The notes beneath the pieces are model-generated. The model had not been told where the DNA came from. It was given only the letters and a program-made list of their open reading frames with translations, and searched no databases. The translations under genes and the position numbers were made by a program. This document shows, piece after piece, positions 374-3,300 of a DNA stretch of 64,000 bases. Within the stretch, counting starts at the first letter, position 1. The number at the start of each line of letters is the position of its first letter. Source of the DNA: Asterias rubens. Taxonomy: Eukaryota. The DNA lies in NCBI RefSeq assembly GCF_902459465.1, contig NC_047071.1:19282001-19346000 (forward strand). Direction: 5' to 3'.

Positions 374-3300
374 TTTTTCTATATGTTTTTGTAGACTACG
401 TACACCACTCTCTCTGCAGTAGGATTTGATGAGCATGCTCAATACATCCTCGTCAATCGTGACCTTATCTTGGTCAATACCGGTGTTCTCACGAGCTTGA
501 GGTATTAGATATTGCTGCATACAAAACATGACAGATAATGTGATAAATCCAACATCAAATCCTCTACTAAATTGCCCTTAATTGAAAAAAAAATTACCTG
601 GGGCCTATCTGTTGTTATTGTTTTTGTGAATGTTGGGATACACCAAGTGTGAATACTGGTCTTTGTTTGACAACCCTGCCTTTAAAAAAAAAAAAAAAAA
701 ATCAACTTTATGTAAGTCCACATTTACGTCACAACTGTGATATAACACAGCCGGCATGCGCACGGACACTTTGATCTAGCATCAGTTATACACCATCAAG
801 TTCATGGTAGGAACAGGTTAGCTTAGGACTGATGCATAAATGACCCCTATGTGACCCGAGTGATGCTTCTTGCCCAAACATTCTGGGCTTGTTTGTCTAA
901 TACTGAAAAACGTCAATTCAGTTCATGATTTTGGCTGAGTGCCCACTGTGGGCATTTTAGGACAAGTTGTTTCCAGCCGCTTAGTCTTTAAAGGTTTAAA
1001 TTCAAAAGTGCTTCTGGTGGAATACTTAAAGAGACATGTGCAGTCTTTATACCTGAAACAATAATTGCATAGTCTTTAATTGGTAAACCAACCTGAGCAA
1101 TAGCTACTTTCTCTTGAGGCACATAACCAGAAACGTCAATCAGTTCCATCCGATCTCGAAGTGGTTCTGGTATGGTATCGATCACATTAGCAGTGCAGAT
1201 AAACAGAACCTGTATCAATCGAAACAAACCAGAGACTTTAAGCACATCAATGAAGATGAGGGCACAAAGTCATATCGGTTAAAGGTGATGTTATAAGGAA
1301 CATTTAACTGGCTCGTTGCGAATAATAAATATAAAAAAATCCTTTCTGAGACTTTGTCTCCAAATATCCAATGTAAGTCCACGTTTACGTCACAACTGTG
1401 ATATAACACAGCCGGCATGCGCACGGACACTTTGATCTAGCATCAGTTATACACCATCAAGTTCATGGTAGGAACAGGTTAGCTTAGGACTGATGCATAA
1501 TGACCCCTCTGCTTACCCAAGCTACCATCATTACAAACAGTGAGATCAGATCTTTTCAATAATGGTAAAATAAATAAGATTGCTGTTATGAAATCTCTTC
1601 AAATTGGAGTTAAAAGATTTGAATTGCCAGCACCTCCGAAGCACCATATGGCTGTGTACAAATAAGTGTTTGAGATTACAGATCACACTGAGAAAAGAAA
1701 AACTAAGATCTTTGACATTTAGTGACCGATCTCAATGATGTTTTGGATTATTATGGAACAATATCTTCAAGGAAAATTTGAGTTTGTAAAAATGGCCTTT
1801 GAAAGACAGCTTTCTGTTGTGTAAGACTGTGTGGTCAAACAATGTGATCAACAGTGGTTGCCCATACAATTTGGTAATGAAAGGGTTAAAATAAAACTGT
1901 TCATCAAATCCTCACAGTTCTTTTTCAGTATACCTTGCTGAGATCTACAGGGACATCCAGGTAGTGATCCAAGAAATTAGAATTCTGTTCCGGATCGAGT
2001 AGCTCTAGTAACGCTGAGGATGGGTCGCCTTGGTAACCCTTGCCTATCTTGTCCACCTGTAGTAAGAAATCAATCAGTTTTAATCAAATAAATAATCAAT
2101 ACTTGAAATTAAAATTGCATTTGAAATAGTTGATCAAATAAATAATCAATAATTCAATTAATTTTTTATTTGAAATAGATGTTAAATTTACATCAGGGAT
2201 AACCAAAATTATGTTTGGTGTTACCCTCGCACCAATGTGTTAGCCCTGTATCTGTGTATACTCGCTACTTTCCCCGAGTTCTGTGAAAAGAAGAGTAAAA
2301 TATATTCAAGATTTGAAAAGAATCGTAAAGTGAATTACCTCATCTATCAGAATGAGTGGATTTTCAGTCTTGACTTTTTTCAGACACTGAATGACTTTAC
2401 CAGGCATGGCCCCAACATACGTTCGTCTGAAAAAAAGGAAAGCACTTGTAAGTTGTAAGTCTTACTCAATTACATTGTGCCTGCATTTGAAGACCAACAG
2501 GGTAACGGTACATCAATGTCCTTCATTTTAAATACCTGTCCAGGGGCTTCGTTTCAAGTCAAACTGTATTTGAGGCTCAACGGTTGTGTGTACTACACTC
2601 ACTCATAGATTTTACAATGATTGCAGGTATTTCTTGCTCTACAACACATGTATGGCCAGAAAAAGTGCCTTCGCCAACTGATCCATGTCACAACTCCTAC
2701 TTCACCAAAGCCAATATCATAGCATTCAGGACTACACTTTGACAGAATTCGATATAGAGGCCTGACTATTTTCCATTCAATCCTTCTTTTTTTATTTAAA
2801 ATGATTTGGTTACAGTTAGCTTACCGGTGTCCTTTGATTTCTGCAACGTCAGTCATACCACCAACACTGAATCTGAAATACTAAACAAATGGTCACGGAA
2901 TTGTTATTAATGCATTTCTTACAACCATATTGTAAAAAACTAGCTTTGTTTGTGTAACATTTGATTTGTTATTTTCTGTACCCTATGCTGAGCAAATCAT
3001 CTGAAAAGTTGCAAACCTGAATGTATTGCACAAAACCACTTCATTTAGCTATGGTTTTCTCCTTACTTTTTTTTCACTTGAAAAGTGTACTATAAATGAA
3101 CAAGAAAACCAAACCTACCTCTCTGTTTAGAGCGTTGGCAATTGACCTAGCAATGCTGGTCTTACCAACCCCTGGTGGACCATAGAAGCACAAGATTTTA
3201 CCCTGGGTTGTTCCCTTCAGCTGACTGACTGCGATGAATTCCTACAAAACAATGAAACAAAATTATGACTATTAATTGCTACCATTTTTAAACTACACGG

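Follow-up and report, generated by a model that had tools for sequence, protein, structure and literature searches.

The 64,000-nucleotide stretch of Asterias rubens DNA analysed here (contig NC_047071.1, positions 19,282,001 to 19,346,000; hereafter the window) carries a repeated element of about 130 nt in introns of LONP1, the gene for a mitochondrial protease. The element probably represents a lineage-specific family of intron-hosted box H/ACA small nucleolar RNAs (snoRNAs), a candidate orphan family that would have spread by cis- and trans-duplication and been maintained by purifying selection. Animal H/ACA snoRNAs are pseudouridylation guides bound by dyskerin, Nop10, Nhp2 and Gar1.

A 57-nt stretch of the core occurs as exact matches at window positions 730-786, 1391-1447 and 7797-7853, all on one strand, with a chance expectation of 0 in the window. 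Each match belongs to a full element of about 130 nt on the minus strand, which is the sense strand of LONP1 (Table 1). Stop-to-stop reading frames and Pfam domains place minus-strand LONP1 exons to either side of every copy; Lon_lid is at 341-529, and Lon_C is encoded by exons immediately beyond the left edge of the window. Because Lon exons flank each copy on that strand, the three elements lie in separate introns, one each, in the sense of LONP1. An earlier note on this DNA had claimed this arrangement, which the exact matches and the exons bear out, and the motifs quoted in it were all found on the minus strand.

BLAST places the element at six sites in the 418-Mb assembly. A covariance model built from the six copies (R1) recovered the same six and nothing else notable, with 150 of about 53,000 first-look candidates scored, so that very diverged relatives may have escaped. 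Copies c1 to c4 occupy four successive LONP1 introns, two copies being just left of the window (C11:19280753 and 19281660), and c5 occupies an intron nearer the 5′ end of the gene; all five fall inside 9 kb. Copy c6 is located on another contig (C13:14848634-14851767, element at 1501-1634), between exons for the BP28CT (NUC211) domain and on the same strand as the RNA sense. This domain is characteristic of HEATR1/UTP10, which acts in ribosome biogenesis and associates with the U3 snoRNP. Each of the six copies is thus intronic and has the sense of its host, in two unrelated host genes (LONP1 and a HEATR1/UTP10-like gene), and the distance from element to nearest splice sites is 150-230 nt. 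The idea of a family confined to its host gene thus fails on c6. That of a duplicated guide RNA family stands as far as there are six low-copy paralogues, with two of the five LONP1 copies and c6 beyond the window. The hundreds of randomly oriented copies that the note had named as the sign of a repeat family are not seen genome-wide, where BLAST gives the six host-sense copies.

Read in the host sense, the element consists of a hairpin with an 8-bp stem, U, AGAUCA, AA, a hairpin with a 7-bp stem, UU, ACA and three more bases, about 128 nt in total. The motifs on the minus strand are GCAUCAGU...ACUGAUGC, U, AGAUCA, AAGUGUCCGUG...CUGUG-UUAUAU-CACAG...CGUGGACUU-ACA. In the minimum free energy fold as well as in near-optimal folds, a hinge separates two hairpins, which are 57 and 52 nt long. 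In the 5′ hairpin, the start of the internal loop's 3′ strand precedes the H box by 14 nt; in the 3′ hairpin, the corresponding distance to ACA is 14-16 nt, varying with which weak pairs close the upper stem. A spacing of 14-16 nt between internal loop and box is a requirement of H/ACA guides, and the box H/ACA layout proposed previously, with internal loops about 14 nt from the boxes, is borne out by the fold. In each of the five LONP1 copies, ACA follows the 3′ stem at a distance of 2 nt, and conservation stops one base beyond the box. The apical loops are CUACCAU (GAACUUG in an alternative fold) and UUAUAU. For c4, the minus strand folds at -37.6 kcal/mol (z=-2.07; 5 of 200 shuffles equal or better) and the plus strand at -30.9 kcal/mol (z=-0.89). 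Six G.U pairs in the stems are possible on the host-sense strand only.

Table 1. Positions of the candidate H/ACA elements and their parts in the window (sequences in RNA sense)
Feature	Position	Strand	Remarks
Copy c4, consensus-like, full candidate H/ACA RNA, 128 nt	1369..1496	-	Begins at the G of GCAUCAGU and ends three nt past ACA
Host intron of c4	between LONP1 exons ~1925-2056 and 1093-1211	-	
Copy c3	708..835	-	Intron between exons 1093-1211 and ~341-514
Copy c5, 133 nt	7775..7907	-	More 5′ LONP1 intron
c4 5′ hairpin	1440..1496	-	8-bp lower stem GCAUCAGU/ACUGAUGC; internal loop CCUAA / GUAUA
c4 5′ hairpin, upper stem (composite; position of the whole hairpin)	1440..1496	-	GCUA..GUUC-loop-GAAC..UGGU
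c4 H box AGAUCA (ANANNA), hinge	1433..1438	-	Identical in 6/6 copies; 1 nt past the 5′ stem
c4 3′ hairpin	1377..1428	-	7-bp lower stem GUCCGUG/CGUGGAC, two G.U pairs among them
c4 3′ hairpin, internal loop CGCAU(GC) / (UGAC)GUAAA (position of the whole hairpin)	1377..1428	-	Loop interior identical in 6/6 copies
c4 3′ hairpin, 8-bp upper stem CGGCUGUG/CACAGUUG, loop UUAUAU (position of the whole hairpin)	1377..1428	-	
c4 ACA box	1372..1374	-	Conservation between copies collapses one base downstream
3′ flank, homologous, diverged	1335..1368	-	GGAGACAAAGUCUC hairpin in c4 and c5, decayed in the others; T-rich end
5′ flank, homologous, moderately diverged (..GGGGUCAUUAU)	1497..1520	-	Within the duplicated unit

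The strongest argument for the H/ACA reading is the selection that appears to act on the core and not on the flanks. Across the six copies, the core (125 columns) has a mean pairwise difference of 3.0% and 10 variable columns, and the alignable flank (58 columns) has a mean pairwise difference of 36% and 39 variable columns; the two sets of variable columns differ with a Fisher p of 1.8e-16. The identity profile drops from 0.93-1.0 to about 0.45 one base past ACA, and rises to 0.95 at the first stem. BLAST between copies aligns units of 150-240 nt, mostly about 190-200 nt in pairs that include the 3′ flank. Because these units extend over the flanks, the flanks are homologous and not just unlike DNA. 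The strongly diverged homologous sequence covers about 20-50 nt on the 5′ side and about 35 nt on the 3′ side; both flanks belong to the duplicated unit and lie outside the conserved core. Since the homologous flanks diverged and the core did not, the duplications are old enough for neutral decay, the RNA-shaped part having been preserved. As judged from these alignments, constraint persisted well beyond the time of duplication, since core and flank differ twelve-fold in divergence. Nearly identical cores with diverged flanks had been described in the earlier note, and this remains correct with the amendment that the near flanks are still homologous.

The changes within the core follow the predicted structure. 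The five LONP1 copies differ by seven substitutions and one 5-nt insertion, all of which are located in the apical loops, the internal loops or the spacer, or else turn G-C into G.U; no stem pair is broken by a substitution. The single change in c3, C to U, affects the 3′ lower stem, where G-C becomes G.U. Copy c5 has the 5-nt insertion and a C to U change on the 5′ side of the first internal loop, and its 2-nt spacer ahead of ACA carries U to A. The 3′ hairpin loop would be the likelier working guide, since it is identical in all six copies while the 5′ hairpin loop differs among them.

A contig run of unknown type (X7) offers a further lead. It contains element-bearing contigs with 10-12 differences, and its version of the adjoining exon has 16 differences in 142 positions, many at intervals that are multiples of three. 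In a variant contig, 1423A>G and 1424C>T convert both G.U pairs of the 3′ lower stem to A-U and C-G, if the partner strand is unchanged, and 1434G>A gives AGAUUA, which still fits ANANNA. The same contig has a loop change, and it also alters one side of the top pair of the 5′ stem, the other side being outside the coverage. These contigs hint at conservation in a diverged genome.

The edges of the duplicated unit bear on how it was copied. Past the unit, the copies share interspersed repeats alone. A T-rich run (RNA sense) lies about 35 nt past ACA and appears as an A run on the plus strand, for example at 685-702. In c1, c3 and c5, a terminal fragment of an abundant repeat follows the T-rich run at the same offset; in the 3′ flank of c3, a 26-nt deletion makes a T18 run and the repeat fragment (630-700) adjacent. 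This abundant repeat may have been part of the ancestral unit, or may have mediated the copying by a route such as repeat-mediated ectopic repair. No terminal inverted repeats (TIRs) were found at the six copies, no target-site duplications or other direct repeats bracket the unit, and no A-rich 3′ tail of the retroposon type follows the element, the run on its 3′ side being T-rich in the RNA sense. The statement that TIRs, target duplications and tails are lacking is therefore upheld, with the addition of the T-rich run, which is not a retroposon poly(A).

Retroposed snoRNAs are marked by an A-rich tail together with a target duplication of 7-19 bp (PMC1687206). A snoRNA retroposon was rejected, as the copies have neither the A-rich tail nor a target-site duplication of 7-19 bp, and an interspersed repeat or transposable element was rejected on the six copies, all host-sense, without TIRs or target-site duplications. 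Since neither tail nor target duplication is present, copying took place at the DNA level. The main routes described for snoRNA expansion are cis-duplication to other introns of the same host and trans-duplication to new hosts (PMC2653536). The very abundant interspersed repeat itself is present at 630-700, ~7680-7740, 7960-8350 and 15074-15530 of the window, with an end that reads GCCTTTAAAGGCAG..GTCAAAGACCAGT, and its RNA and contig depth is thousands of times that of its surroundings.

A non-functional low-copy repeat might also be proposed, in which a segment was copied among introns, its core was homogenized by gene conversion, and the H/ACA appearance is a coincidence. With five copies inside 9 kb conversion is plausible, the repeat fragment at one offset in three copies means that the unit may have travelled with repeat DNA, and the element has no Rfam match, significant target or covariation (see below). 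Gene conversion is a poor account, however, because the breaks fall at the same base in every copy and because c6, on another contig, keeps a core about 95% identical to the LONP1 copies with flanks about 30% different. Conversion tracts are not expected to end alike, one base past ACA and a few bases before the first stem. The substitutions in the LONP1 copies spare the stems, and all six copies are host-sense. A low-copy repeat of this kind is an unlikely explanation.

An H/ACA snoRNA family, by comparison, agrees with animal intron-encoded box H/ACA snoRNAs in several respects. The element has the hairpin-hinge-hairpin-tail order in about 128 nt, an ANANNA (AGAUCA) in the hinge, ACA at the edge of the conserved block and loops 14-16 nt before the boxes, and it sits in introns transcribed by RNA polymerase II (Pol II), in the sense orientation, one per intron. 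It differs from them in having neither sequence nor covariance-model similarity to any Rfam H/ACA family and no significant complementarity to ribosomal RNA (rRNA) or small nuclear RNA (snRNA), and it is known here from sequence, fold and a few reads. Clusters of snoRNA paralogues formed by cis- and trans-duplication were reported in chicken, platypus and mammals (PMC2653536, PMC1687206). The present copies resemble them in being nearly identical in successive introns with a sense copy in another host, and in their highly conserved sequence and structure within differing surroundings. They are unlike them in the host, LONP1, a mitochondrial protease gene. LONP1 is not described as a snoRNA host in the literature found by full-text search, as judged by titles and abstracts.

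Two further proposals may be considered. In the first, a lineage-specific orphan H/ACA RNA amplified inside LONP1 acts on neither rRNA nor snRNA; mRNA or other RNA might be pseudouridylated under its guidance, or ribonucleoprotein (RNP) assembly on five introns might tune the processing of LONP1 pre-mRNA. We regard this as an improbable proposal. If RNP assembly did tune LONP1 processing, snoRNP assembly would be coupled to the expression of a mitochondrial protease. In the second, the structured intronic element has some other role, as a cis-acting splicing or processing element or as a protein-binding RNA of H/ACA shape. Such a role would suit a strongly conserved core that has no identifiable modification target and is repeated within a gene. 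A cis role, however, leaves the near-identical copy in an unrelated host unexplained and does not account for the exact placement of the H box and ACA with the 14-16-nt spacing, and the copies stand at a distance from the splice sites, not at them. We consider another role quite improbable.

Several observations, given here and in the following paragraphs, weigh against the H/ACA snoRNA reading. The thermodynamic z-score of the fold is only moderate. An Rfam E-value scan of 650-1560 gave SNORA74 as the best match, with 14 bits and E=0.46, where the gathering score is 71. In this alignment to SNORA74 (U19, RF00090) the 5′ hairpin, the H box and ACA are aligned, and the score indicates a generic H/ACA resemblance and not homology. 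The Rfam check suggested in the earlier note accordingly found no family: at the gathering threshold, the scan of the whole window returned no H/ACA family, and tRNA only. The tRNA is a tRNA-Asn (GTT) gene at 53423-53495 on the plus strand (Rfam 62.9 bits), which ARAGORN also calls. In c6, the ACA box has become ACG, and the uppermost pair of the 5′ stem is lost to U.U. This copy may be impaired, either by recent disabling or with a variant box that is tolerated. No compensatory covariation occurs among the six copies, no pair varying on both sides, a result that is uninformative either way because the copies are too alike.

The RNA reads are also few. X16 is a random-primed RNA-seq run and not a small-RNA library, and it is apparently unstranded, with exon reads in both mate classes; because it behaves as unstranded on the exon, the strand of the element reads is unreadable. 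Depth is 2-4 on the two elements c3 and c4, with about six reads on the elements in all. The exon at 1093-1211 has a summed depth of about 5-10 over both mate classes, and 11 reads show the splice at 1211. The remaining unique intron, about 600 nt, has 0 reads. This pattern of some six reads fits a stable intron-derived RNA. All four c4 reads carry 1398G>T and 1422C>T, which are in none of the six genome copies; both changes would weaken stems unless compensated. These reads would come from an unassembled or allelic seventh copy, or from a copy in a closely related individual. Two c3 reads extend about 20 nt beyond the 5′ end of the core. In a second RNA run (X17) the exon itself is uncovered.

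The state of c6, the stem-weakening variants in the reads and the lack of a result in the target search described below would also suit a snoRNA-derived family that once worked and is now dead and drifting, with no copy yielding a stable RNA. The five LONP1 copies nevertheless retain both boxes and all stems, and the twelve-fold core/flank contrast implies constraint long after the duplications, which makes a dead family improbable, slightly more so than a structured element of another role.

The search for targets gave no support to a guide function on the organism's own rRNA or snRNA. Every U of its own 18S, 5.8S, 28S, U2, U5 and U6 was compared with the guide pockets in all plausible registers, with shuffled-guide nulls. 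The rRNA source was the sole assembled ribosomal DNA (rDNA) unit, on C23, with complete 18S and 5.8S and with 28S in two pieces, about 50 model positions missing; the scan did not extend to U1, U4, 5S, any minor snRNA or the roughly 50 nt lacking from 28S. No target above shuffled guides was found in 18S, 5.8S, the 28S pieces, U2, U5 or U6, the check that the earlier note had asked for: the 5′ hairpin scored 10 at best, with a null median of about 11, and the 3′ hairpin 9, with a null median of about 10. The best lead is 18S U336, where UACG-UU-AUGCG faces CGUA and CGCAU with 4+5 Watson-Crick pairs, 15 nt from ACA. U336 is located in the apical part of a variable helix. A hit in the retroelement-interrupted end of a 28S piece was discarded as non-rRNA.

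As there is no significant rRNA or snRNA target, the RNA would be an orphan for now. Both guide and orphan classes of H/ACA RNAs have been described (PMC1636440). Since orphan H/ACA RNAs exist, this status does not exclude membership among the H/ACA snoRNAs.

An H/ACA small Cajal body-specific RNA (scaRNA) guiding pseudouridylation of U6 (psi31 equivalent) and U5 (psi46 equivalent), an option raised in the earlier note, shares the two-hairpin H/ACA layout and its 5-bp upstream half-matches are real (in the organism's own snRNAs, the 5 nt preceding the U6 site AUAUAC-U-A pair with GUAUA, and those preceding the U5 site UUUUAC-U-A pair with GUAAA), but it is highly improbable, since such half-matches are at chance expectation, the downstream halves are unpaired with either 5′ loop strand in any allowed register, and neither apical loop contains a UGAG Cajal body (CAB) box.

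Other observations were made on the loci that supplied these RNAs. In the rDNA unit (G000:C23:10514500-10530200), an insertion of about 4.5 kb interrupts 28S near Rfam model position 2337/2389. A probe for the 3′ end of 18S has two further matches, one on C10 with a low 18S-model score and one on C16, a 136-nt 3′-end fragment. The U5 snRNA genes form a tandem cluster (G000:C6:17106693-17151956) of at least 17 copies at about 1.1-1.2 kb spacing, on both strands.

Metagenomic data were consulted as well. An open reading frame from a coastal metagenome runs through the element with 98% identity, and it most likely comes from the same species. An exact-pattern scan of metagenomes for the region from the H box to the 3′ stem gave 0 matches. 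No R1 match was present on two marine-metagenome contigs with a 61%-identical LONP1 exon, which is uninformative at such a distance. Further along the window, the first exon of LONP1 is at 10604-11365 on the minus strand, and exons of a FAD-dependent oxidoreductase (Pfam DAO) are at 12855-14508 on the plus strand, head-to-head with LONP1.

If the element is an H/ACA snoRNA family, its biogenesis would follow the course established for H/ACA RNAs. Pol II would transcribe the host pre-mRNA (LONP1 or HEATR1-like), and dyskerin/Cbf5, Nop10 and Nhp2, with Naf1 and later Gar1, would assemble on both hairpins and on the H box and ACA. Splicing and debranching, followed by exonuclease trimming of the intron, would leave an RNA of about 128 nt that ends three nt past ACA. 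The internal loop of one or both hairpins would then pair with a substrate RNA and position a uridine for isomerization to pseudouridine. The family itself would have spread by DNA-level copying of a unit of 190-240 nt, in cis within LONP1 and once in trans to another host.

Multi-copy intronic snoRNAs are well known, and the gain here would be a better annotation of an ordinary kind of gene, with no concept changed. If confirmed, the element would give this poorly annotated animal genome one more H/ACA snoRNA family, so far without annotation, and perhaps a pseudouridine specific to the lineage. It would also provide a clean case of cis- and trans-duplication of an intronic snoRNA, in which the selection on the RNA can be measured against co-duplicated flanks that decay neutrally.

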